Positions 9,709 to 21,458 are shown, counted from the first letter of the stretch. The stretch: DNA of 64,000 bases from Obrimoposthia wandeli (GCA_977020255.1 CDROCS010001101.1:620001-684000); one strand, 5' to 3'. Program-made: numbers and translations. Notes: generated by a model not told the origin, from the letters alone.

Positions 9709-10368
9709 ATGCTTATACGACCAATCGCAAAACGTAATGGTGTGACGTTTACTCTTGTCGCTGGTTTATTTATCTTTGCCAGTATTATTGCCCTGCTCTC
9801 AATCGCTAATAATAACAGTTTCTACTTTCCACTATTCGCTGGCTCGTTGATTATAGGTATCATCCTATTAATTATTGGGTTCGCCAAAATAAATGATGTC
9901 GATTATCGCTTTTCACTCACCAATGAAGGGATACATTATTTCACTGCGCGTGGCGGCTTCACTATTCTTTGGCAAGATATACAACGAATTGATATTCCTA
10001 AAATAAATGATGGTCTGGCACTAAAAGAACTACCTTACATAGGTATTCGCCTAACTCAACGAGAACACCTTATTAACAGCGCTTCATTACCCACCCTCTC
10101 GCACATGTTAGTAGAACAGCGTGCGCTTATCATGCTGACAAATCCCAATGGCACATTGTATGGCAATGCTGACAACATGCTTTACCCTAATATAAAAGTA
10201 ACCCATAAATATCAAGGGCTGCAGGCCATGTTCATCAATCGAATGCACTACCTTCACGACACGTTAGGTTATGATATTTACTTTCCGGAAGATGATCTTG
10301 ACCGCTCACCCGCGGAGTTTGTTACGCTATTACGTCAGTTTAAAGCAAATTGTCCTAGATCATCGTAA
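9709..10368 (+). CDS. DUF2982 family membrane protein
   Basis: RNGVTFTL, 2 TM, WQDIQRIDIP, LPYIGIRL, LGYDIYF...DLDR motifs. Confidence 0.75.
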   Translation: MLIRPIAKRNGVTFTLVAGLFIFASIIALLSIANNNSFYFPLFAGSLIIGIILLIIGFAKINDVDYRFSLTNEGIHYFTARGGFTILWQDIQRIDIPKINDGLALKELPYIGIRLTQREHLINSASLPTLSHMLVEQRALIMLTNPNGTLYGNADNMLYPNIKVTHKYQGLQAMFINRMHYLHDTLGYDIYFPEDDLDRSPAEFVTLLRQFKANCPRSS

Positions 10369-10435
10369 ACAATAATAATTATCAATTAGAGTTGCATTAA
10401 ACATTTTTATATGGATAATACGAACTATTCTCATT
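10368..10435 (+). promoter_or_regulatory. Two Fur-like boxes (10368-10386, 10417-10435) flanking or overlapping a sigma70-like promoter
   Basis: aacaataataattatcaat and aatacgaactattctcatt each match 13 of 16 defined positions of the Vibrio-type consensus AATGANAATNATTNTCATT; -35 ttgcat (10392) and -10 gataat (10414). Confidence 0.65.
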
Positions 10436-10482: not shown

Positions 10483-12504
10483 GTGAAAAAATCTGCCCTT
10501 TGCTTTGCCATCTCTTCTGCGTTACTTACTGCTTCATTTGCATCACATGCTGCAAATGTAAAAGTACTTGATAAAACACTTTCTCCAGCAGCTAACTTTC
10601 TTGCTTATACCGAGTTCGAATTATCAGGTGAACCACTTGCTGAAGCGCTAGGTTTAGACCTTGATGTTTTAGACCCGAATCAAGTAGATCAACCAACTGC
10701 ATTCGATTATGCAGCGGGTATTGAAAGCTACGAATACTCAGAAGAAGCGATGTATGCGTTAAACTACCAGTCTACTATGGGTCCTCACCTAGTAAACGGT
10801 CCAGTTAACCAAGCACGCGGCGGTTCTCTTGCTGACTTAGGTAAACGTTTTATTTCTCTTGCGGGTGCAGTAGGCTTCCCAAGTGAAGAGATCCCATTAA
10901 ACATGTACCCTATCTCAGTACCTTACGTATCAGGTAACCCTGAATTCGTTGGTAAAGTAGATACAACCAAAGTGAATGGCGAAGAACTTGAAGTATTATC
11001 TGCTACAGGTAAAGCAGCAGTTCACAACACAGTGATCCCAGCTTATTTCCGTGACTACAAAACACTAGCATGGGACAGCGCAAGTTTCGATAAAGCCTTA
11101 AACCCAGGCGCAATCGGCAGTATCTTCCTTAAAGAAGTTATGTGGTCACAAGATTTCTTAGGTGGCATGCACGTTACGACGACAGACGAAGAAGTTGAAG
11201 CAACATCAAGCACAATGGATCAAGATGGTGTACACAGTCTTGGTGTATCCGCTGCCGATGGTTTCAACGGTATGATCTTAACTGAAATGTCGCTAGACAA
11301 GTTACTTATCCTGCAACAGCAACTTGGCTTTGACGGTAAGAACCTAGGCGTTAAATTTGGTCCTGATTATGATGCATCTAAAAACCCTATCTGGTTTGCA
11401 CATAAAGTAGCCGTTAAAGAAACACAGAAAAACAACGTAAATAACATCGGTAAACTGACAGTGACAGATGGTTCATCATCACTGCGTGATACGTGGATGC
11501 TATTATGGCCTGTCAGTGAATTCTATGCATTCACAGACCAACGTACTGCAAATACTGCACAAAACCCAGCGTTTAAAGCAGTATTTGATGGCAAACCATT
11601 TGCTGCAGCACCAAAACAAAACATTGATAACAAAACAAGCAATAATATCATTGCTGACGATGCGTTCTCAGTAGCAAGCAACGTGGCTAACCTATCGTTC
11701 CAAAACTTAGCAAACCTACATTTCAATGAGAAAGCAGGTACGTTTGTTACTAAGTACGACGGCAAGCAAAATGCACAAGTTGATACATTCGACGCGGCAT
11801 ACAGCATCGTAGCATTATCAATTTACCAACGTTCACAAGATGCATTACCTGTAGGTTATGCAGCAGCAGACGGCGGTGATGTAGATTTAGCAACACCTCA
11901 AGGTAAAAAAGCACTTGGTCTAATCAAAGCACAAGCAGATTACATCGTTAACACGTTAGTAGCGAAAAATGGTCTAGTATATGACGGCGCGACGATTGGC
12001 AAATCAGTAGATAAAAACCAATCACTTGACGCTCAATTCGCTTCAATCCGTGGTTTAGTTGCCGCTTACCTTGCTACACAAGACGACAGCTACAAGCAAG
12101 CAGCACGTTCAATCTTCCTTGCGGTAGAGAAAAACATGTTTGATGCTGAGCTAGGTACTTGGGCACAAACACCAGGTAAAGCAACAATCCACACACCATT
12201 AACTGCTGCAGCAATCTCTGGCGGTTTACGTGAAACAATACTTCACCTTGCTAACGAAGAAGGCGAACATGTTCCAGCTCTAGAACTACAACACTTAACT
12301 GAACGTTACACTGCTTGGTTCAAGAAAGTTGTTAACGGTGGCCAACAGTTATCAGAATGGGTTGGTGATTCAGGTGAAAACTTACTGAAAGACAGCAATA
12401 CTACTGATTCAGATAATGATGGTGTGAAACAAGTTACAGCTGCTGGCGGTAAATTTGGTACAGCACAAACGATGGCAGCAAAAGTATCGGTTAGTGCTAA
12501 ATAA
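10483..12504 (+). CDS. Uncharacterised secreted protein, 673 aa, C-terminal half possibly alpha/alpha-toroid; first gene of FTR1 cluster
   Basis: GTG start with AAGGA SD; signal peptide MKKSALCFAISSALLTASFASHA; helical repeat LDAQFASIRGLVAAYLATQDDSYKQAARSIF resembles six-hairpin glycosidase-like folds; strongly biased codon use. Confidence 0.7.
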   Translation: MKKSALCFAISSALLTASFASHAANVKVLDKTLSPAANFLAYTEFELSGEPLAEALGLDLDVLDPNQVDQPTAFDYAAGIESYEYSEEAMYALNYQSTMGPHLVNGPVNQARGGSLADLGKRFISLAGAVGFPSEEIPLNMYPISVPYVSGNPEFVGKVDTTKVNGEELEVLSATGKAAVHNTVIPAYFRDYKTLAWDSASFDKALNPGAIGSIFLKEVMWSQDFLGGMHVTTTDEEVEATSSTMDQDGVHSLGVSAADGFNGMILTEMSLDKLLILQQQLGFDGKNLGVKFGPDYDASKNPIWFAHKVAVKETQKNNVNNIGKLTVTDGSSSLRDTWMLLWPVSEFYAFTDQRTANTAQNPAFKAVFDGKPFAAAPKQNIDNKTSNNIIADDAFSVASNVANLSFQNLANLHFNEKAGTFVTKYDGKQNAQVDTFDAAYSIVALSIYQRSQDALPVGYAAADGGDVDLATPQGKKALGLIKAQADYIVNTLVAKNGLVYDGATIGKSVDKNQSLDAQFASIRGLVAAYLATQDDSYKQAARSIFLAVEKNMFDAELGTWAQTPGKATIHTPLTAAAISGGLRETILHLANEEGEHVPALELQHLTERYTAWFKKVVNGGQQLSEWVGDSGENLLKDSNTTDSDNDGVKQVTAAGGKFGTAQTMAAKVSVSAK

Positions 12505-12676: not shown

Positions 12677-13159
12677 ATGTCAGTTCAAGCAGCTACTCCA
12701 GCCGACGATAACGTCTGGTCACGTTTACAACAACATTTTAAACGTCTGGCCTTTCACCATAAAAAAGCGGAAGCAATATTATATTTAATGTTCTTATCGG
12801 GACTTTTATTGTGGCCGTTTATCACGATCCCATGGCAAGTAGAACGCACCGTATTACTCATGCACATGCTTGCTGGTATTAGTATATTTCCTGTTTTTGT
12901 TGGCAGCTTCTGGTTGTCGCACCGTAACTTGATCAAAAAAAGTAACAAGAAATTCTTGCGTCAAACAGGCACAATAATAGAATACTTACTTATTGCCTGT
13001 ACTCTTACCGGTATTTACCTGACGTTTTGGGGTAACACCGGCAATAATTTCAGTATCTTAATGCAAGATATCCATTTTTACAGCTCATGGTTACTCACCC
13101 CACTGGTTCTTCGTCACGCATGGCGCTGGACAGTCATTAAATTTTTTAGGAAGTCATAA
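12677..13159 (+). CDS. Putative di-heme cytochrome b-like 4-TM membrane protein
   Basis: Four TM helices; His pairs H63/H82 (TM2) and H133/H147 (TM4); SG and TG in TM1 and TM3, a typical cytochrome b heme-packing pattern. Confidence 0.65.
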   Translation: MSVQAATPADDNVWSRLQQHFKRLAFHHKKAEAILYLMFLSGLLLWPFITIPWQVERTVLLMHMLAGISIFPVFVGSFWLSHRNLIKKSNKKFLRQTGTIIEYLLIACTLTGIYLTFWGNTGNNFSILMQDIHFYSSWLLTPLVLRHAWRWTVIKFFRKS

Positions 13160-13160
13160 T

Positions 13161-13997
13161 ATGTTTGCCAGTTTTTTAATTACCTTCCGTGAAGGACTCG
13201 AAGCCTTCCTACTTGTTGGCATTATACTTTCTTACCTTGCAAAACTGGGCGAATCAAAGCACAACAAACTCATCTATATTGGTGTTGCACTCGGTTTGAT
13301 TGCGTCATTAATTGTTGCCTTCATTTTTCAGTTTGTAGTCGACCAGTTTGATTCCCATGAATACCGTAATTTATTAATGGCTGGTATTTTAAGCTTTGCG
13401 ACAGTCGTGCTTACCTACATGGCCATTTGGATGCAGCGCCAGGCTAAAAGCCAAGTCACGAACATGCAAAACAATATCCGCCAAATATTAACCACAGGTA
13501 ATGTTTTTGGGTTAATCTTTCTGGCCTTCCTTGCGGTGATGCGCGAAGGCTTTGAAACTGTGTTATTTTTCTCGGCATTGATGTATTCAGGCCAAGGCGA
13601 TTTTTCATTACAAGATGGATTAATTGGCGCTGGTGCAGGTCTTGTTGCATCACTGGTTCTCGTTATTGTACTAATGCGTGGCACCCGTAAAGTACCAATC
13701 CAAGCTTTCTTCAAATGGACCAGCTTGTTGATCATTATCATTGCCGCTGGTTTATTATCTTCAGCAACCAATATGCTACAGAGCGCCGACGTATTACCTG
13801 TATTCCAAACAGCGGTCTTTGATATTAGCCATATCCTTGATGACCAAGGTGTATTTGGTACTTTCTTACGGGCTTTATTTGGTTATAATTCATCACCTAA
13901 TCTATTACCTCTGATTGTTTGGGGCATTTATTTAGCGGTGTTCTCTGTGTTCTGGCAGCGTGGTTATCAAGTCCCGGCTAAAACAGCCGACGCTTAA
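13161..13997 (+). CDS. FTR1/EfeU family iron permease
   Basis: Two REXXE motifs (FREGLEA, MREGFET), about 7 TM, C-terminal LRALFGY. Confidence 0.92.
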   Translation: MFASFLITFREGLEAFLLVGIILSYLAKLGESKHNKLIYIGVALGLIASLIVAFIFQFVVDQFDSHEYRNLLMAGILSFATVVLTYMAIWMQRQAKSQVTNMQNNIRQILTTGNVFGLIFLAFLAVMREGFETVLFFSALMYSGQGDFSLQDGLIGAGAGLVASLVLVIVLMRGTRKVPIQAFFKWTSLLIIIIAAGLLSSATNMLQSADVLPVFQTAVFDISHILDDQGVFGTFLRALFGYNSSPNLLPLIVWGIYLAVFSVFWQRGYQVPAKTADA

Positions 13998-14092: not shown

Positions 14093-15562
14093 ATGTCGAA
14101 ACAAATTGTAATTTTAGGCGCAGGTCCAGCTGGACTAATGGCCGCATGGGAATTTAATCAAGCTGGCTATGAAGTCACTATTCTAGAGCGAGAAACATTT
14201 GTCGGTGGCATGTGCGCGACCCAAACATTCCAAGGCGAAAAAGGCGAATATCGTTTCGACTACGGTGGTCATCGCTTCATCACTAAAAACCCGAAATTAT
14301 TACAGTTTATCGATGACTTAATGACTGACGATCTACTTTATGCTGAGCGTACCAGCGTGATCCGTTTTAAAGGCCGTACTTACAACTACCCGCTCGCAAT
14401 TGGTAATTTACTGCGTAATGCGCCAATCAGTTTATTAGCAGGTGCTGCGGTAGATTTAGTATTTAAGCTACCATTCCAGAAGCGCCCTAGCGAACAAAGT
14501 ACCAGCAACTTTGCCGAGTGGATTGAAACGCGTTTTGGTACAACCTTATATAAAAACTTCTTCGAAGGTTACACAGGTAAACTTTGGGGTATCGACCCAC
14601 GTCAGCTCTCTGCAGACTGGGCGTCTCAACGCATTAGCTTGTTAGATTTAAAAGATGTAGCACGACGCTTAATACCCACTCGTGGCGCAACACCTCGTAC
14701 TTACGCTAAAAAATACCGTTATCCTAAACTCGGCTTTGGCCAAATGTATACCAAGCTTGCTGAAAAGTTACAGTTGCAAGGTGTAACGATAGTACAAGGC
14801 GCAAACATCACAGCGCTAAATCAAGGCCATGATCTACGTAATGAGCTTAATAAGAGCAATAGCATTGATGCCGTGACTTATGAGCTTAACGGTGAAACAC
14901 ATACGATTAATTGTGATCACGTGGTAGGCACAATCCCATTACCTGTAGTTTGTACATTAACAGGCTTTGATTCAGGTTTAACTTATCGTTCACTGCGCTT
15001 TTTTAACATGCCAATGGCGACAGAAAATGTGTCTCAGAATACCTGGCAGTATCTATCAGATCCTGAGTTACTGGGTACTCGCTTACAAGAACCTCGTCGT
15101 CGCTCACCCTTTATGGCACCCAAAGGTCAAACATCGGTTATGATCGAGATCCCTTGTGATAAAGGTGATGATGTTTGGAATATGGACAACGATAAACTAT
15201 TAAAACGAGTAAAAGAAGACCTGGATCATTTAGACGTACCAGATGTAAGTACAGGTGAATACTTTACTACTTATACTGAATACGCTTATCCAATGATGGA
15301 TGTAAGCTACAACGCCAAACGTGAACGTGCAATTACGCACCTTAACCAATTTGACAACTTGGTCATGACTGGTCGCCAAGGTACTTTCCGTTACATCTTC
15401 ACTGATACCGCTATGGAAATGGGCTTAATGGCCGCAGAAGGTATTATCAAAGGTGAAGATAACCGTCGCCAAATTTTTGATCACCGTAACGAAAAAACAG
15501 TGATTGAAGTGCAAAGTATAATGGATGATAAAAAAACACCGGAGGGTAAAAATGTCACTTAG
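14093..15562 (+). CDS. FAD-dependent oxidoreductase, UDP-galactopyranose mutase / protoporphyrinogen oxidase superfamily
   Basis: Rossmann GAGPAG, ERETFVGG (GG motif), FDYGGHRF, YTGKLWG, C-terminal GRQGTFRY..TDTAM. Confidence 0.8.
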   Translation: MSKQIVILGAGPAGLMAAWEFNQAGYEVTILERETFVGGMCATQTFQGEKGEYRFDYGGHRFITKNPKLLQFIDDLMTDDLLYAERTSVIRFKGRTYNYPLAIGNLLRNAPISLLAGAAVDLVFKLPFQKRPSEQSTSNFAEWIETRFGTTLYKNFFEGYTGKLWGIDPRQLSADWASQRISLLDLKDVARRLIPTRGATPRTYAKKYRYPKLGFGQMYTKLAEKLQLQGVTIVQGANITALNQGHDLRNELNKSNSIDAVTYELNGETHTINCDHVVGTIPLPVVCTLTGFDSGLTYRSLRFFNMPMATENVSQNTWQYLSDPELLGTRLQEPRRRSPFMAPKGQTSVMIEIPCDKGDDVWNMDNDKLLKRVKEDLDHLDVPDVSTGEYFTTYTEYAYPMMDVSYNAKRERAITHLNQFDNLVMTGRQGTFRYIFTDTAMEMGLMAAEGIIKGEDNRRQIFDHRNEKTVIEVQSIMDDKKTPEGKNVT

Positions 15563-16178
15563 TTCGATACAATCATTTAGTGTGATTAACGCAAAAACAG
15601 TAAAGTCGTTCTTTTTCAGTTTCTTCGTATTGCTATTTAGTACGCAAAGTTTTGCTTACTCTTATGCTGCAGCTGGTAAAGAACCTTTAATTGAAGGCCG
15701 TGAAACATTATTGAAAGCCTTATCAGCAAATGATTACACTGCAGTGCAAACGGCATATGACTCAATGCTGGCAGAGTTTGTTTACTTTAATGAGCATCAT
15801 GGTCTAAATGTTGATGAGCAAATGCAAACAGCGATCACAAACCAAGATCAACAAGGTGTGGCTACAGCCTTAACCACCACCATGAAGGCAGAAGTAATGC
15901 GCCGCCTTGAAGGTGCAGAGCAAAACATCAACGATTACCAAGTCGCTAAAGTCCTCGTGGTCAAAAGTAAGTTATTTATTGATTTACTGGCCGCTGATTT
16001 AACGGCTGATAATCGCCAGAAAGCAGATTTAGCGATCCGTGGGGCGCTTGCCTCTATCGGTAACCCTGGTGTATTTGGTGTTGGCCAAAAACCTGCGGAT
16101 GTAACGCGCTTCATTGCCTTCCGTACTGACTTACAAGCGGCACTGCAATTCACATTACCCGATGCTCCAACGAAGTAG
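15552..16178 (+). CDS. Uncharacterised secreted all-helical protein
   Basis: ATG 15552 with GGAGG SD, overlapping the upstream stop; signal peptide ending QSFA; mature YSYAAAGKEP...; amphipathic helices. Confidence 0.7.
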   Translation: MSLSSIQSFSVINAKTVKSFFFSFFVLLFSTQSFAYSYAAAGKEPLIEGRETLLKALSANDYTAVQTAYDSMLAEFVYFNEHHGLNVDEQMQTAITNQDQQGVATALTTTMKAEVMRRLEGAEQNINDYQVAKVLVVKSKLFIDLLAADLTADNRQKADLAIRGALASIGNPGVFGVGQKPADVTRFIAFRTDLQAALQFTLPDAPTK

Positions 16179-17577
16179 TAAGCCTTGCTACACTGATTTA
16201 ATTGTCGGTATTAGCGTAATAGCCTGCATTGCAGGCTATTTTGGCTTACTCAATTATTATAGTTTTGATATTAGTAGTGATGATGCACTGTATTTTCAGC
16301 GCGCATTAACTTATTTTTCGGTATTAGAATTCAGCCCACACTTTCCCGGTTATCCCGGCTTTGTTTGGTTTGAACGCTGTATCGCTGCAATCACTTCCCA
16401 TCCCAATAGTAATGTATTATTAAGTTTTCTTTCAGCTATCGCGTTAACGTTCAGCATCTTTGTCTATTGCTATCAACGTATGCAATCAAAGGGGTTTACT
16501 GTCCTTGCCGTTATGCTTTTTTTACTGCAAGGCAATATTGCTGAATTGGCCTTTAATGGCTTGTCTGATGCGACCGCACTGTGGTTCTTCAGCTTATATT
16601 TATTACAGGCTCACCTGTATACGCGGCCCACTACGAACATTGAAAAAAAAGATAAATACTCAGCACTAATCGGTGGACTGCTATTAGCGGCATGCCTCGC
16701 TACCCGTCCCTCTTATTTACCGCTAGTCGCGAGCGCACTGGTTTTAGAGTTTATCTATCACCCTCAGGGACGATTACGTTTTAAGTGGCTCGGTTGGCAA
16801 TTATTCAGTATCACAATCCTTGGGTTATTTTGCGCTGGTTATGTCTTTATGCAAGATGGCTGGGCATATATTGAAGAAGGCCAACGCTTTACCCAAGGTC
16901 ACTTTACTATTTGGGGCAATACCACCAGTACAACAGATTCTTTATTACAACAATGGCTAACAACCCTAACCAATACCTATTCAAGTTTAGGGCTTGCCTT
17001 ATTAACCACGAGCCTTACCATCGGCCTTTATATACCCAAGACACGTGGTCTTAGTATTCTCGCTTGTTGCTGGTTTGCATGGATAATTCGTGGACAAAAT
17101 CCAGAAAACATTCGCCATTTAGCTGTTTTTAGCTTGTTGTTACCCATCATAATCGCTCAATTAATGGCACATTTTTATCAGCAAAAAAACCTCCGGCCTA
17201 TCCTATACGTGTTTAGTATTATATTACTGGTAACACTGGGTTATCACAGTCTAAAACAGTTCTCAGAGCAGAAACATGCCCCGGCATTACAAGCAACTCA
17301 GTTTTTTGACGCAATGAATACGCAACAGATTATTATCAGTAATTATAATATCGATAATTTGCGTCACACTTTACCGCAACACGTCATTTTAGATCGCCAC
17401 TATCAAAACAGCAGTAATTACCAAGCTCAACAGCAAGGATACTGGCGACTGAGCAGTAATACACTTGGCACTAATAAACTGGGTAATGATGATTTGGTAG
17501 CACAATTTAAAGGTCGTTTTCTGGGGGAACGTAGTTTATACCTCTATTATTTTGATCCTAATCATTTTAGCCCGTAA
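16162..17577 (+). CDS. GT-C fold (PMT/ArnT-like) polytopic membrane protein, putative glycosyltransferase
   Basis: Likely ATG 16162 overlapping the upstream stop; about 10-11 TM; first external loop SDDALYF...SPHFPGYP; later LACLATRPSY motif. Confidence 0.6.
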   Translation: MLQRSSKPCYTDLIVGISVIACIAGYFGLLNYYSFDISSDDALYFQRALTYFSVLEFSPHFPGYPGFVWFERCIAAITSHPNSNVLLSFLSAIALTFSIFVYCYQRMQSKGFTVLAVMLFLLQGNIAELAFNGLSDATALWFFSLYLLQAHLYTRPTTNIEKKDKYSALIGGLLLAACLATRPSYLPLVASALVLEFIYHPQGRLRFKWLGWQLFSITILGLFCAGYVFMQDGWAYIEEGQRFTQGHFTIWGNTTSTTDSLLQQWLTTLTNTYSSLGLALLTTSLTIGLYIPKTRGLSILACCWFAWIIRGQNPENIRHLAVFSLLLPIIIAQLMAHFYQQKNLRPILYVFSIILLVTLGYHSLKQFSEQKHAPALQATQFFDAMNTQQIIISNYNIDNLRHTLPQHVILDRHYQNSSNYQAQQQGYWRLSSNTLGTNKLGNDDLVAQFKGRFLGERSLYLYYFDPNHFSP

Positions 17578-17592
17578 ACATAACTGCAATTA

Positions 17593-17636
17593 TTGCACTA
17601 TCGCGCCAAAACTATATAATGATAACCATTCTTAAT
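17593..17636 (+). promoter_or_regulatory. Internal sigma70 promoter overlapped by a Fur-like box
   Basis: -35 ttgcac (17593), perfect -10 tataat (17615, 16-bp spacer); aatgataaccattcttaat (17618-17636) matches 13/16 Fur consensus positions. Confidence 0.65.
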
Positions 17637-17672: not shown

Positions 17673-20600
17673 ATGAATATCAATATGAATATAAATACAT
17701 TGCCAAAATTAATGCTTACTTTGTTATTGCTAATAACTAGCTCACTTTACGCCAGTACTGCTTATGCAAGTACGACTGAAACTAAAAGTAACTATGCAAA
17801 TACCAAAAGTAACAGCTTATTACTATCAACTGATAAAACGCAGTTTATTAGTGCAAATATGGATGCAGGTAGCGTCAGTATTTTGAATGCAGAGACAGGT
17901 GAATTAATCGCAGAGCAAGCCTTAGGTAAAGACCTTCGTCGCCTCGCGCTCGACCCGGTTAACAACCAATTATTAGTCAGTGATTATCTTGCCAATCAGC
18001 TCTACCTTATTGATGCAAAGAGCCTAGCTTTAATCAAAACTATTAAAACCGGTGACCGCCCTTTCGGTATTGTCTACGACGAATATAATAAACAATATTA
18101 CGTCACTTTATTTGAAGCAAAGCAGCTATTAACCGTTTCAATTGATGGTGAAATAACCGCGACAACCAAAACAGCAGATACCCCGCGTGGCCTTGCTCTT
18201 GCAAATGACGGGCGTTTATTTGTCACCCACAGCATGACAGGTCAAGTATCTATTTATGATACGCGTTCTGCTACCTTGCAATCAAACACGTTGAAATCAA
18301 ACAAACTACAATTAAAAAAAGTTATTCAGCTTGTCGATACACCAGCACATGCATCACGCGCAGTACCACAGGGTAAACCTCGTGTACTCGATAATATTGC
18401 GATATCGCCCGATGGCACGCAAGCTTGGCTACCGCATGTATTATGGTCATTCGCGGATAATTTTCAATTTCAATCGACTGTCTTCCCCACTATTTCATTA
18501 CTTGACCTGACACCAGGCAAAGAAAAGGAAATGGTTGATAAACGTAAACAGTTATTCAAACAAATAAACATCATTGAAAATAACAACACCACGCGTATTG
18601 TATCGAACCCACACGATGCCGCATTCCGCGAAGACGGTAAAAAAGTATTCATTACCTTATCAGGTTCAGAAGATCTACTGGTGTTTGATCTGTCGCGCCA
18701 AGGAAAAATTGGTAAAAAATCGAAGCGTCATCGCCGAACTAAATTACAAGGCGGCGTAAAAGCGACGCAAATATACCGTCATATACCCGGAACTAACCCG
18801 CGTAGCCTAATTGAAAAAGACGGCACACTGTATGTTCAAAATGCCATGTCTCACGACTTAGTCAGTTTTGATGTCAGTGGTAAAGGTCCTTTTGCTAAAG
18901 TTAAATTAGCGAATGCGCAATTCGCTAAATTAATTAGTCACGATCCAATAGCACCAGAATTACGTTTAGGCAAAACCCTCTTCAATCTTGCAAACAGCGA
19001 TAAATTTGAAAACTCTGCCATGGCGGGTGATTTCTGGATGAGCTGTAACTCTTGTCATGTTGACGGTTTTAACTTTACCAACAAATACTTATTAGCGGAC
19101 GGTACTAAAGACGTTAAAGTAAATGCGATGACAGGCCACGTTGGGCTCGCCAGCATGATTGCCGGTGATCCGATTGAAGCTTACATTGATATGATCCAAA
19201 AGACGCAAGGTGGTATGGGTACTGATCCTAAAAAGCCAGAACTACCAAAAGTCGATCCTAAAGATCCTTCGGTAGAGATTGTACGTTTGATGTCAGCATT
19301 AAACATGTACGTCACCACTAAAGAGAATTTACCTTATTTATCAACTTGGTTACGTTTTGATGACGAACGCAAGTTCACCCATAAATCAGAATGGCTAAAT
19401 TCAGCAAGTTGCGAATCATGCCACAGCACCCTGTATAAACAGTGGTCAAATTCAAACCACGGCATGCACATGGATAGCCCTTATTATCGCTTCCAAGAAA
19501 ATCTCGCCGCAGAGTCAGAAGGTGAACCCTTTAGAAACTTATGTCGAGGCTGCCATGCACCGCAAACGATTCTAAATAACAATACAGCGCCACTGACTCA
19601 CCTCAACAGTATGTACGAGAAAGAAGGTCAATCACTACGTGATGCATTGAAAGAAGGTCTACCTGTCGATGAAACAGGAACCAGTTGTGTATTCTGTCAC
19701 CGTATAACCAAAGCTGAAGATGCTGGTGGTAATACCGATCTGACTGTTAACTTAAAAGATCGCGCTGAATACTTGTTTGAATTTTCGAGTAACCCAGCGT
19801 TAAAACTCATTGCCGAAGCACAAATAAATGCATCGCCACAGCAACACAAAGACAGCTATTCAAACCCTGAACTGTATAAAAGCTCATTATATTGTGCTAC
19901 TTGCCATAATGAGTTCACACCAGGTCAAGGTGCTAACGTGAATAATAACTATGGTGAATGGCAAGCCTCTAAATTTAACGCACCAGACAACCCAGAACAG
20001 AATAAAACCTGTATCGATTGTCACATGCGCTTAGACATGACTGACTTTGATAAGAAAGTACCAGGTCAAGCAACCGATAATGGCCCAATTAAGCCCAACT
20101 TAATTGCCCATAACTTTATTGGTGGTAACTACTACTTCTCTGATATGCGTTCGAAAGAACACGGTAAACTAAGCCGCGATATATTACGCAATGCACTGTT
20201 ACTTGATGTAGAAGCCAGCGAAGATGGCAGTAGCATCGACGTGAAGGTAACAAACCATAATACCGGTCATAAGATGCCAGGTGGCGCACGTCGTCAAGTA
20301 TGGGTTGATTTAGTTGTCACAGACAGCCAAGGCGTTGAACGCTTAGTCAGCGGCCAACTAAACGATGGTTATCTACCAAAAGACAGTCGTGTATTCGCCA
20401 AGAAAAGTGGTTATATGCACGGGGAACCGGTGGGACTTAAATTCTGGCGTGTAGAAAAAATTCTATCGGATACCCGTATATCACCCGATGAAACACGTAT
20501 TGAAACGTTTGAACTTCCTGAGGGGCTGAGTTATCCAATCACAGTAGTCGCTAAGATTAACTACCGCTCATTTTCGAAGCCGTTAACGAGTAAGGTACAA

Positions 20601-20681
20601 GCAGCGTTCCCTGAACAGGACATTCCTTTTGCTGATGTGATTGAATTAAATAAAGTAACCAAAGTGTTCCAGAAAAAGTAA
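17673..20681 (+). CDS. YVTN/YncE-type beta-propeller fused to hexaheme cytochrome c
   Basis: Signal peptide; propeller repeats (TGDRPFGIV, TADTPRGLAL, LDNIAISPDG, SNPHDAAF); six CXXCH: CNSCH, CESCH, CRGCH, CVFCH, CATCH, CIDCH. The track's ATG 17619 lies inside the Fur box, so 17673 is preferred. Confidence 0.85.
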   Translation: MNINMNINTLPKLMLTLLLLITSSLYASTAYASTTETKSNYANTKSNSLLLSTDKTQFISANMDAGSVSILNAETGELIAEQALGKDLRRLALDPVNNQLLVSDYLANQLYLIDAKSLALIKTIKTGDRPFGIVYDEYNKQYYVTLFEAKQLLTVSIDGEITATTKTADTPRGLALANDGRLFVTHSMTGQVSIYDTRSATLQSNTLKSNKLQLKKVIQLVDTPAHASRAVPQGKPRVLDNIAISPDGTQAWLPHVLWSFADNFQFQSTVFPTISLLDLTPGKEKEMVDKRKQLFKQINIIENNNTTRIVSNPHDAAFREDGKKVFITLSGSEDLLVFDLSRQGKIGKKSKRHRRTKLQGGVKATQIYRHIPGTNPRSLIEKDGTLYVQNAMSHDLVSFDVSGKGPFAKVKLANAQFAKLISHDPIAPELRLGKTLFNLANSDKFENSAMAGDFWMSCNSCHVDGFNFTNKYLLADGTKDVKVNAMTGHVGLASMIAGDPIEAYIDMIQKTQGGMGTDPKKPELPKVDPKDPSVEIVRLMSALNMYVTTKENLPYLSTWLRFDDERKFTHKSEWLNSASCESCHSTLYKQWSNSNHGMHMDSPYYRFQENLAAESEGEPFRNLCRGCHAPQTILNNNTAPLTHLNSMYEKEGQSLRDALKEGLPVDETGTSCVFCHRITKAEDAGGNTDLTVNLKDRAEYLFEFSSNPALKLIAEAQINASPQQHKDSYSNPELYKSSLYCATCHNEFTPGQGANVNNNYGEWQASKFNAPDNPEQNKTCIDCHMRLDMTDFDKKVPGQATDNGPIKPNLIAHNFIGGNYYFSDMRSKEHGKLSRDILRNALLLDVEASEDGSSIDVKVTNHNTGHKMPGGARRQVWVDLVVTDSQGVERLVSGQLNDGYLPKDSRVFAKKSGYMHGEPVGLKFWRVEKILSDTRISPDETRIETFELPEGLSYPITVVAKINYRSFSKPLTSKVQAAFPEQDIPFADVIELNKVTKVFQKK

Positions 20682-20734: not shown

Positions 20735-20822
20735 TGGCAAGTTACTTATATTCATTAAATAATTCGCCTTTTTGCTAATTCGGCATAAGCTTATAGATAA
20801 CTTTGTTAATAAAGCACTCTTT

Positions 20823-21458
20823 ATGCATTCATATATCGCTAAGCAGCCGATTTTAAACAGCGCCCGTCAAATTGTCGCTTATGAGCTTTTGTATCGTGAC
20901 AGTTTAGAAAATACCTTTCCAATGATTAATGCTGAGATCGCCACTGAGCGCTTAGTTGAAGAACATTTGTTAAACTCTAATATCAATAAACTCGTTGATA
21001 ATAAGCCCTACTTCATCAATTTTACCGAAAAATGCATACTCGCAGGCTTGCCAATAAAACTCATCAACAAGCCTATCATTATTGAAGTACTAGAAGATGT
21101 GCCGCCAACGAAAGCGATATTTAATGCGTTAACAAAATTGAAAAATATGGGATTTACCATCGCGCTGGATGATTTTATTTATTCTGAAGAATGGTTACCT
21201 TTTTTTAGCATTATCGATATTATCAAGTTTGATATTACCCTCACCTCTTTTAAAGAAATAAAAACGCTAAAGCCATTATTAGACCAACATCAAGTCAGTA
21301 TATTAGTTGAAAAAATAGAAACGGAATGGCAATTTAAGCAAGCTAAAAATCTGGAGGGTAAATATTTTCAAGGTTATTTATTCTCTGAACCAGAGATAGT
21401 ATTAAATGAGATTAATAGGCAGGATATAAAAGGAACACAGGTGATAAGCATCATTTAA
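20823..21458 (+). CDS. EAL-domain protein of YuxH/CdgJ type, lacking the usual C-terminal HDOD domain
   Basis: MHSYIAKQPIL...YELLYRD, FINFT, IIEVLEDV, IALDDF, EKIET, YFQGYLFSEP; ORF stops about 20 aa after the EAL domain. Confidence 0.75.
   Translation: MHSYIAKQPILNSARQIVAYELLYRDSLENTFPMINAEIATERLVEEHLLNSNINKLVDNKPYFINFTEKCILAGLPIKLINKPIIIEVLEDVPPTKAIFNALTKLKNMGFTIALDDFIYSEEWLPFFSIIDIIKFDITLTSFKEIKTLKPLLDQHQVSILVEKIETEWQFKQAKNLEGKYFQGYLFSEPEIVLNEINRQDIKGTQVISII

Follow-up and report, generated by a model that had tools for sequence, protein, structure and literature searches.

A propeller-hexaheme cytochrome with a cytochrome b-like membrane partner and a possible role in bacterial iron acquisition

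The stretch of DNA analyzed here (the window; 64,000 nucleotides, positions 620001-684000 of contig CDROCS010001101.1 from the Obrimoposthia wandeli assembly GCA_977020255.1) contains a cluster of seven genes, A to G, the last of which encodes a cytochrome with six heme-binding CXXCH motifs. The product of gene G (17673-20681, + strand) is a secreted protein composed of a seven-bladed beta-propeller, a heme c domain derived from cytochrome c peroxidases (CCP), a pentaheme module of the c552/MccSep type, and an immunoglobulin-like (Ig-like) domain. The constant partner of G is not the iron permease FTR1 but B, a small membrane protein that is a putative di-heme cytochrome b. We propose, with a probability of roughly 0.4, that G serves as the subunit carrying electrons through the periplasm in an Fe(III)-reducing iron-acquisition module induced by iron starvation.

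Domain organization and distribution of protein G

Gene G was analyzed using its translation, family models, a set of homologs, an AlphaFold2 model, and Foldseek. The open reading frame is uninterrupted (17619/17673-20681, + strand), contains no in-frame TGA, and gives a product of 1002 residues from the methionine at 17673. The N-terminus forms a Sec-type signal peptide (17673-17771, + strand) with a lysine-rich n-region, a leucine-rich core, and an AYA/ST boundary. The CXXCH motifs are positioned at residues 458, 580, 624, 672, 741, and 780, corresponding to nucleotides 19044, 19410, 19542, 19686, 19893, and 20010. A preliminary description of this DNA had named the same six nucleotide positions, all of which are reproduced exactly by the translation, and its signal peptide and YVTN-type propeller are also recovered. 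All 12 cysteines of G lie within the six motifs. Among the matches listed, 120 of 120 homologs have exactly six CXXCH motifs, and their number in G is therefore not a product of chance.

The AlphaFold2 model of G, calculated from 40 homologs, has a mean predicted local distance difference test score (pLDDT) of 80 and a predicted template-modeling score (pTM) of 0.77. It consists of a helix in the signal peptide (residues 10-32), the propeller (approximately 45-420), a helical heme domain (428-560), multiheme helices (575-840), and a beta-sandwich (842-1000). Six histidines outside the CXXCH motifs, one per heme, are invariant in the heme and Ig-like domains: 489, 570, 596, 725, 813, and 866. 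Because of these residues and the lack of spare cysteines, the six hemes are probably all six-coordinate. Six-coordinate hemes would favor outer-sphere electron transfer rather than catalysis on small molecules at a heme.

Full-length relatives of G number more than 345 in a word-indexed search covering 5.8 billion proteins, and 120 of them were listed. The sequence identity is 93-95% in Moritella, 56-60% in Photobacterium, Vibrio, Aliivibrio, Endozoicomonas, Pseudoalteromonas, and Colwellia, and 44-49% in Poseidonibacter/Arcobacter, Aeromonas, and many alphaproteobacteria. The gene is present in at least 154 species-representative genomes, including those of Aeromonas, Photobacterium, Vibrio, Aliivibrio, Moritella, Arcobacter/Poseidonibacter, and Magnetospirillum, the majority of which have it linked to FTR1. 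Databases name the relatives only "multiheme c-type cytochrome", "cytochrome D1 domain-containing protein", or "YncE family protein". The genes of the window are 90-98% identical to those for Moritella proteins at the protein level, and the assembly is of eukaryotic size (1.35 Gb in 6912 contigs). The contig, which is at least 684 kb long, is therefore bacterial and belongs to a symbiont or a contaminant; this has no bearing on the analysis.

The N-terminal half of G is related to di-heme proteins of Bacillota

The propeller (17805-18932, + strand) matches the YVTN-repeat model TIGR02276 with 46.5 bits, compared to a cut-off of 27.85, and the approximately 28 strands at residues 45-420 of the model make up seven blades. 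Its nearest folds are those of hydrazine synthase beta (5c2v_B, the top Foldseek match, E 4.8e-16) and of an archaeal YVTN propeller (1l0q, E 1e-15). One of the late blades carries a conserved polybasic loop, KIGKKSKRHRRTKLQGG (window positions 18699-18752, residues approximately 343-360), with the family consensus KKRxKRRRxKK. The loop is an insertion that has no counterpart in the Bacillota relatives of G and is of low confidence in the model. Possible docking partners for it are the membrane and the acidic N-terminal region of protein A.

The propeller is followed by the heme-1 domain (18945-19367, + strand; CXXCH at 19044-19058), whose origin lies in the first of the two heme domains of CCP/MauG-type di-heme proteins. 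A search with residues 40-565 of G found proteins of approximately 652 residues from Bacillus, Geobacillus, Paenibacillus, and their kin, with a query coverage of 91-99% and an identity of 33-39%. These relatives contain two CXXCH motifs and the Pfam domains CCP_MauG and RoxA-like_Cyt-c. In a pairwise comparison, residues 10-584 of G are 33% identical to the Bacillota propeller/di-heme CCP_MauG proteins (E 3e-99). The alignment extends from the signal peptide to the second CXXCH motif of G, which coincides with the second heme motif of the Bacillota proteins. The peroxidase-like context that had been noticed around the first CXXCH motif thus reflects true homology, as established by the alignment to these di-heme proteins. 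The direct family match is weak: CCP_MauG (PF03150) covers only residues 445-486 of G, with an E of 0.01 and 16.9 bits compared to a cut-off of 25.6. A search of the Protein Data Bank with a profile of the heme-1 domain gave no significant match, the best relevant one being TsdBA (5LO9, E 0.4).

The motifs RNxP, FWDGR, and Q..EM located after heme 1 are what we take to be hallmarks of di-heme cytochrome c peroxidases. They are retained as RNxPSN, FMWDGSR, and QGEMGG in eight Bacillota relatives. The same sites in six sequences of the G family, from the window and five homologs, read K/D-x-x-x-N-A-x-T-G-H, M-I-A-G-D, and T-Q-G-G-M-G. The family has gained the invariant His489, which is positioned at the end of the replaced x-N-A-x-T-G-H motif. 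Judged by these hallmark motifs, G is predicted not to be a peroxidase. It was also rejected as a member of the di-heme CCP/MauG group, with PF03150 below the threshold and the second class-I heme domain replaced by the pentaheme module. The alignments indicate that G arose from a propeller/di-heme protein whose second heme domain was exchanged for a module combining five hemes and an Ig-like domain.

The C-terminal half of G resembles pentaheme cytochrome c552

The pentaheme module (19368-20192, + strand) contains the last five CXXCH motifs and four of the invariant histidines (570, 596, 725, and 813). Family models PF13435, PF14522, and PF22113 pass or reach their cut-offs, PF13435 with 26.4 bits compared to 20.8. 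In fold (Foldseek E 5.9e-13, template-modeling score 0.68 normalized by target) as well as in a profile search (E 4.5e-13, over residues 40-113 and 279-419 of 5ZE8, a match that takes in the first heme motifs and the Ig-like domain), the C-terminal half of G corresponds to a pentaheme cytochrome, c552 from Thermochromatium tepidum (5ZE8). The cytochrome is reportedly called low-potential in the title of a 2019 paper by Chen and colleagues. The Ig-like beta-sandwich (20193-20678, + strand; residues 842-1000 of the model) aligns with residues 279-419 of 5ZE8. Its invariant G-H866-x-x-P-G-G motif, G-H866-K-M-P-G-G in the window protein, is matched to P-H-A-M-P-T-G of 5ZE8, and H866, P869, and G871 do not vary in 40 sequences of the G family. 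The c554/c-552-like region and the beta-rich C-terminus of the preliminary description can thus be specified as a module that passes PF13435 and matches 5ZE8 by fold and profile, and as the Ig-like domain of the c552 family, respectively.

Closer identities were rejected. The model of the Nitrosomonas tetraheme cytochrome c554 (NF043010) scores 9.4 bits compared to a cut-off of 400, and only the broad PF13435 is passed. The ExtKL model NF040886 gives a partial match to residues 728-949, with 44.9 bits compared to a cut-off of 250. The PHC family, which includes ExtKL and MccSep of Geobacter, has been discussed previously (PMC11976967). MccSep is a polysulfide reductase with a cysteine-ligated heme 2 and a catalytic selenocysteine, Sec325 (10.1101/2025.11.18.688581). 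A sulfur active site of this kind is not available to G, in which every cysteine belongs to a CXXCH motif and there is no selenocysteine.

Membrane protein B is the constant partner of G

The seven proteins of the window cluster were mapped by tblastn to 85 loci of G relatives, which were assembled from pattern- and word-based searches and are non-exhaustive. Gene B adjoins G in 82 of the loci and is fused to it in 19; among the three loci that lack B, two are truncated at that gene. The other partners are found near G in 64 (A), 63 (D), 62 (E), 62 (F), and 53 (FTR1) loci. Protein B, and not FTR1, is the constant partner of G. FTR1 is in the cluster in 46 of the 69 loci (67%) that have at least 7.5 kb of sequence on both sides of G. 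The same 69 include eight with A-B-G-D-E-F but not FTR1, and 15 with A-B-G or B-G only. Genes D, E, and F form a set that accompanies FTR1, but they are also present without it. Whole-genome searches for FTR1 with working positive controls found none in at least five carriers of G: two A-B-G-only genomes, Amphritea, and two Terasakiella. Five additional A-B-G-only genomes gave no match to the window FTR1 and D queries in searches without a positive control. FTR1 was rejected as the defining partner of G, since it is missing from the cluster in a third of the loci and from several whole genomes.

Gene B (12677-13159, + strand) encodes a four-helix membrane protein of 160 residues, which is a putative DUF4405-like di-heme cytochrome b. 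The N-terminal extension of approximately 160 residues in alphaproteobacterial versions of G, which are 1125-1175 residues long, corresponds to B, with an identity of 35-39% (E 3e-33 and 3e-24). In 80 distinct sequences of B, histidines 63 and 82 of the second transmembrane helix and 133 and 147 of the fourth are invariant, and are arranged as pairs at both ends of these two helices. The pattern is that of a putative di-heme b protein, with one heme near each face of the membrane. The C-terminus of B is cytoplasmic according to the positive-inside rule, which fits the role of the G signal helix as the fifth membrane span in the B-G fusions.

The nearest cluster to B in the ESM Atlas is DUF4405, with a score of 0.91. 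Weak, sub-threshold Pfam matches were obtained to PF14358 in six of 25 B members (best E 0.002) and to Ni_hydr_CYTB (prokaryotic cytochrome b561) in two of 25. Binding of heme b has been shown for a DUF4405 protein, whose relatives include MsrQ and the PepSY-type ferric reductases (bioRxiv 10.1101/2024.03.13.584918). An electron wire formed by the hemes of G had been suggested previously, and the near-constant association with a four-histidine, cytochrome b-like membrane protein, fused to G in some of the loci, supports it.

Protein A and its ancient pairing with propeller-heme proteins

Gene A (10483-12504, + strand), the second core partner of G, encodes a secreted protein of 673 residues that belongs to no family and is modeled by AlphaFold2 as an (alpha/alpha)6 barrel with a pLDDT of 90. 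In a VIA comparison the model matched GH105, YteR, mannose isomerase, and cellobiose 2-epimerase with Z-scores of 18-20.6 across 300-340 residues, at a sequence identity of approximately 10% and with low Foldseek TM-scores. A family scan of 21 A homologs gave only chance-level hints of epimerases. The protein is highly conserved, with a mean column identity of 63%, and contains an invariant acidic and tyrosine-rich stretch, IESYEYSEE, with two ExxE spacings, which is also kept in the Bacillus homolog. It is a suggestion that this stretch binds iron. In Aeromonas, A is encoded elsewhere in the genome, and some genomes that have B-G lack A. Folds similar to A in the ESM Atlas include fusions to cytochrome c domains (950 residues; members labeled mostly viral) and Bacteroidota proteins with the Por_Secre_tail of the type IX secretion system.

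In Bacillus, Geobacillus, and Paenibacillus, a homolog of A (42% identity, E 9e-164) is encoded directly upstream of the propeller/di-heme gene. The presence of A beside the Bacillota relative of G indicates that A and the propeller-heme protein are an ancient pair. The two genes, for the A homolog and a propeller/di-heme CCP-like lipoprotein, form a unit behind near-perfect Fur boxes (locus L089, 5653-5771; L091, 5948-5962; L090, 5782-5800). Upstream of the Bacillus pair there is an 18/19 Fur site and a perfect (14/14) 7-1-7 Fur box, and the Paenibacillus box matches 13/14. The Bacillota unit looks like an uncharacterized Fur-regulated pair.

Evidence for iron-dependent regulation of the G cluster

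Sites similar to Fur boxes are located upstream of A, the first gene of the cluster (10365-10432; 13-14 of 19 consensus matches at 10365, 10371, and 10414), and directly upstream of G (17615-17633; 15/19). Sites with the same score as the latter precede G in four Moritella loci. When a site was defined as at least 14 of 19 consensus positions within 250 nucleotides upstream, 60% of 62 loci had one in front of A, compared to 3.3% of 451 control promoter-like regions from the same loci (Fisher 8e-28, Mann-Whitney 2e-26). Such sites are also found upstream of A in genomes that contain only A-B-G.

Expression data on Aeromonas hydrophila treated with 200 µM dipyridyl cover four contiguous genes, YP_857055 to YP_857058, of which YP_857056 is labeled by Gene Ontology (GO) terms as an iron permease and YP_857057 as protoporphyrinogen-oxidase-like. 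From the order B-G-FTR1-D-E-F in Aeromonas and the GO terms of its neighbors, we infer that YP_857055 is G. The log2 changes in mRNA and protein are +3.28 and +0.98 for YP_857055 (presumed G), +2.39 and +1.65 for YP_857056 (presumed FTR1), +1.69 and +1.36 for YP_857057 (presumed D), and +1.81 and +1.30 for YP_857058 (presumed E) (PMC5987420, supplement 1). Two iron-induced proteins named cytochrome c in an A. salmonicida proteome were considered as G and rejected; they are NrfA and a solute-binding protein. The Fur-like boxes, together with the induction of the presumed orthologues under iron limitation, place the G cluster in the predicted Fur regulon.

The permease of the cluster is gene C (13161-13997, + strand), an FTR1/EfeU-type protein (PF03239, E 1.3e-46; EfeU model NF041756, 207 bits, below the cut-off of 255) with two REXXE motifs, REGLE and REGFE. 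NCBIfam labels its family a ferrous iron transporter subunit. The preliminary description had linked G to iron through the neighboring FTR1. The link to iron stands, given the 46 of 69 loci with FTR1, the Fur-like sites, and the induction in A. hydrophila, whereas FTR1 is not the partner that defines the system.

Possible function of the G system

An iron-redox role of the G system is probable, and the reduction of Fe(III) to Fe(II) is its tentatively favored direction. Electrons from the quinol pool would cross the inner membrane through the two b hemes of B. They would then pass along the c552-type module with its five hemes and on through heme 1, spanning a protein of about 1000 residues, until they reach a site formed by the propeller and/or protein A, where bound Fe(III) would be reduced to Fe(II). 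The Fe(II) would be imported by FTR1/EfeU where it is present, and by other ferrous transporters where FTR1 is missing. Reduction is favored because Fur-boxed A-B-G units occur in genomes without detected FTR1, where generic ferrous transporters could serve, and because, of the characterized or described relatives of the pentaheme module, MccSep is a reductase and c552 a low-potential cytochrome. It is also favored because the DUF4405/PepSY-type relatives of B act reductively, and because of the NCBIfam label of the permease family. More broadly, it is possible that A-B-G represents a phylum-spanning class of assimilatory iron redox machines, wired to the quinone pool through a minimal di-heme cytochrome b, which reduce (or oxidize) iron for uptake and evolved from the Fur-regulated Bacillota pair of A and a propeller/di-heme peroxidase.

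Several points weigh against the proposed function. FTR1 permeases are classically paired with an oxidase, which favors the opposite direction, and the peroxidase-hallmark motifs retained by the Bacillota relatives hint that the ancestor carried out oxidative chemistry. The Fur consensus is rich in AT, as are the regions scored upstream of A, whose GC content is 36%, compared to 44% in the controls. The assignment of YP_857055 as the G orthologue is based on gene order and the GO terms of the neighbors, not on its sequence, and the heme ligation of G is deduced solely from invariant residues. The fold of A is of a carbohydrate-enzyme type.

The cluster might alternatively work as a ferroxidase, in which Fe(II) would be oxidized at a propeller/heme-1/A site, the electrons would flow through the hemes and B to quinone, and Fe(III) would pass to FTR1, perhaps through the acidic, ExxE-rich A. 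Characterized FTR1 systems use an oxidizing partner, fusions of cytochrome c and FTR1 exist, and di-heme b proteins can also pass electrons to quinone. Such a wire would parallel Fet3-Ftr1, EfeUOB, and FtrABCD, and would account for the linkage of FTR1 in 67% of the full-flank loci, the invariant ExxE-type acidic and tyrosine motif of A, one cytochrome c/FTR1 fusion seen as an annotation, and the CCP-type motifs of the Bacillota relatives, which are suited to oxidant chemistry. However, in the genomes with Fur-boxed A-B-G and no detected FTR1 it would produce periplasmic Fe(III) without a dedicated importer in the cluster. Furthermore, six probably bis-histidine hemes with low-potential relatives would be poorer acceptors of electrons from Fe(II), and G has lost the peroxidase-type motifs. 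Iron oxidation is rather unlikely. The descent of the N-terminal half of G from CCP/MauG-type di-heme proteins raises the prospect that A is the substrate. As in MauG/preMADH or MbnH/MbnP, a heme protein would oxidize residues of A, or a ligand held in its barrel, to make or release a metal-binding species. The ancient pairing of A with a propeller-heme protein, extending from Bacillota to Pseudomonadota, a weak MbnH-family match in G, and the fusion of A-like domains to cytochrome c in an Atlas cluster agree with this, but G has lost the CCP/MauG-type motifs, some B-G genomes lack A, and the five added hemes and a putative membrane cytochrome b fit sustained turnover rather than one-off maturation. 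A maturation role for G is improbable.

The homology of the pentaheme module to the polysulfide reductase MccSep, the resemblance of the propeller to hydrazine synthase beta and NirN/NirF, and weak cd1 and NrfH-type matches in G would suit a respiratory or detoxifying oxidoreductase of polysulfide, peroxide, or nitrogen oxides that is iron-regulated by happenstance. It is a very improbable function: an MccSep active site is impossible in G, which has neither spare cysteine nor selenocysteine, and the Fur boxes, the linkage to FTR1, and the induction under iron limitation point to iron. No nitrogen- or sulfur-cycle genes are conserved near G in the 85 loci. None of these loci is a nitrogen- or sulfur-cycle one, whereas the preliminary description had named a majority of homologs in such loci without FTR1 as evidence against its proposal. 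Fe(III) reduction for uptake remains the preferred function of the G system.

Other genes of the cluster and its surroundings

The products of the seven cluster genes were scanned with Pfam and NCBIfam models. The scans gave nothing significant for A, B, E, and F, and detected no cupredoxin, multicopper oxidase, P19, M75/EfeO, DyP, or polyferredoxin in the window cluster. Gene D (14093-15562, + strand) encodes a cytoplasmic FAD oxidoreductase similar to amine oxidases and UDP-galactopyranose mutase (NF005547, 581.7 bits compared to a cut-off of 380; PF01593, PF13450, and PF03275). Gene E (15525-16178, + strand; start codon uncertain) encodes a secreted protein of approximately 200 residues without a family, which co-occurs with D and F in 62 loci. 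Gene F (16114-17577, + strand; start codon uncertain) encodes a polytopic, weakly GT-C-like membrane protein. The window copy of F has no family, and its homologs give weak matches to PMT_2 (7.8e-5), EpsG (3.6e-5), and a TMEM260-like model (0.0025). The D-E-F set could provide cytoplasmic reduction or modify a periplasmic component.

Directly 3' of G, the window encodes a short protein containing only the C-terminal part of an EAL domain (20772-21458), which is not conserved in other loci. A histidine kinase at 7582-9684 matches TIGR03785, the kinase of the "proteobacterial dedicated sortase system", over its full length with 430 bits, under the cut-off of 612. In Cognaticolwellia mytili (locus L028, 13048-14090), where no FTR1 was found, genes for DUF4920 and PepSY_TM_like_2 proteins lie immediately 3' of G; PepSY_TM_like_2 is a family related to ferric reductases. 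The chromosome of Terasakiella sp. LRMN1 (loci L061 and L084) carries two A-BG-D-E-F clusters approximately 500 kb apart, both without FTR1. One alphaproteobacterial cluster has narGHJI approximately 6 kb on its 3' side (locus L005, 19149-23522), past a transposase; it is the sole nitrogen-cycle neighbor seen and is not conserved.

Significance and comparison with known systems

Known multiheme cytochromes serve in respiration on metals, sulfur, and nitrogen compounds and, to our knowledge, not in iron nutrition, and the partners recorded for bacterial FTR1 permeases are copper, cupredoxin, or DyP proteins. A literature search found no description of a propeller-hexaheme/A/B/FTR1 system. If the proposed role in iron nutrition is true, G would be the first multiheme cytochrome dedicated to it rather than to respiration, and an iron reductase or oxidase of this kind would represent a new iron-acquisition mechanism in marine and fish-associated bacteria. 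It would also assign a role to A and B, which each stand for a large family of "hypothetical" proteins, and show how a peroxidase-type scaffold has been rewired through module swapping. Direct tests of the G system are feasible in strains amenable to genetics.

The analogies to cd1 nitrite reductase and hydrazine synthase that were drawn in the preliminary description hold at the level of fold. Hydrazine synthase beta(-gamma) and the cd1, NirN, and NirF proteins have a seven-bladed YVTN-like propeller beside a CCP-like heme domain, as does G. The analogies do not extend further, as the model scores are below the cut-offs and the gene context does not match. Cd1 nitrite reductase was rejected: PF02239 scores 22.4 bits compared to 25.5 and covers only residues 66-199, the propeller has seven rather than eight blades and precedes the heme domain, and there is no context for d1 heme. 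Hydrazine synthase was rejected based on the scores of NF052340 (31 bits compared to 560) and NF052342 (20 compared to 1250) and the lack of anammox genes in any of the 85 loci. Neither anammox nor denitrification genes are conserved around G in these loci.

The last 440 residues of G resemble c552 (5ZE8) and the PHC family (MccSep/ExtKL, the sPHC of cable bacteria, and PtdA). The similarity includes five CXXCH motifs in matching order, the initial C-x-x-C-H-x-x-[IL]-[YF]-x-Q-W...H, and the Ig-like beta-sandwich with H-x-x-P-[TG]-G. However, the PHC proteins are stand-alone and approximately 430-450 residues long, whereas G additionally has a propeller and a sixth heme and is paired with a putative membrane cytochrome b. 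MccSep differs additionally in its polysulfide reduction with a cysteine-ligated heme 2 and selenocysteine, neither of which residue type is available in G. The Bacillota lipoproteins of approximately 652 residues, named [quoted passage not shown], share the propeller, the first heme domain, the upstream A homolog, and the Fur boxes with G. In contrast to G, they have two hemes and keep the RNxPSN, FMWDGSR, and QGEMGG motifs; like G, they are uncharacterized.

Protein B is similar to PepSY/FoxB, MsrQ, and DUF4405 carriers in its four conserved histidines, its small helical membrane fold, its periplasmic redox partner, and its iron context. It differs from them in having four helices and 160 residues, in scoring below the Pfam thresholds, and in its partner, which is a multiheme cytochrome and not a flavinylated or molybdenum protein. 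The G cluster as a whole is comparable to the FTR1 systems Fet3-Ftr1, EfeUOB, FtrABCD, P19-cFtr1/FetMP, and the cytochrome c-FTR1 fusions, which combine a two-REXXE permease with extracytoplasmic redox proteins under iron control. EfeB provides a precedent for a heme enzyme serving an FTR1-type permease. Unlike in these systems, the redox partner in the G cluster is a hexaheme c-type protein with a putative di-heme b anchor, and FTR1 is dispensable in a third of the loci. By analogy, the G system may act as a redox partner of FTR1-type uptake, in which a heme wire and a membrane cytochrome b take the place of copper proteins or a DyP peroxidase.

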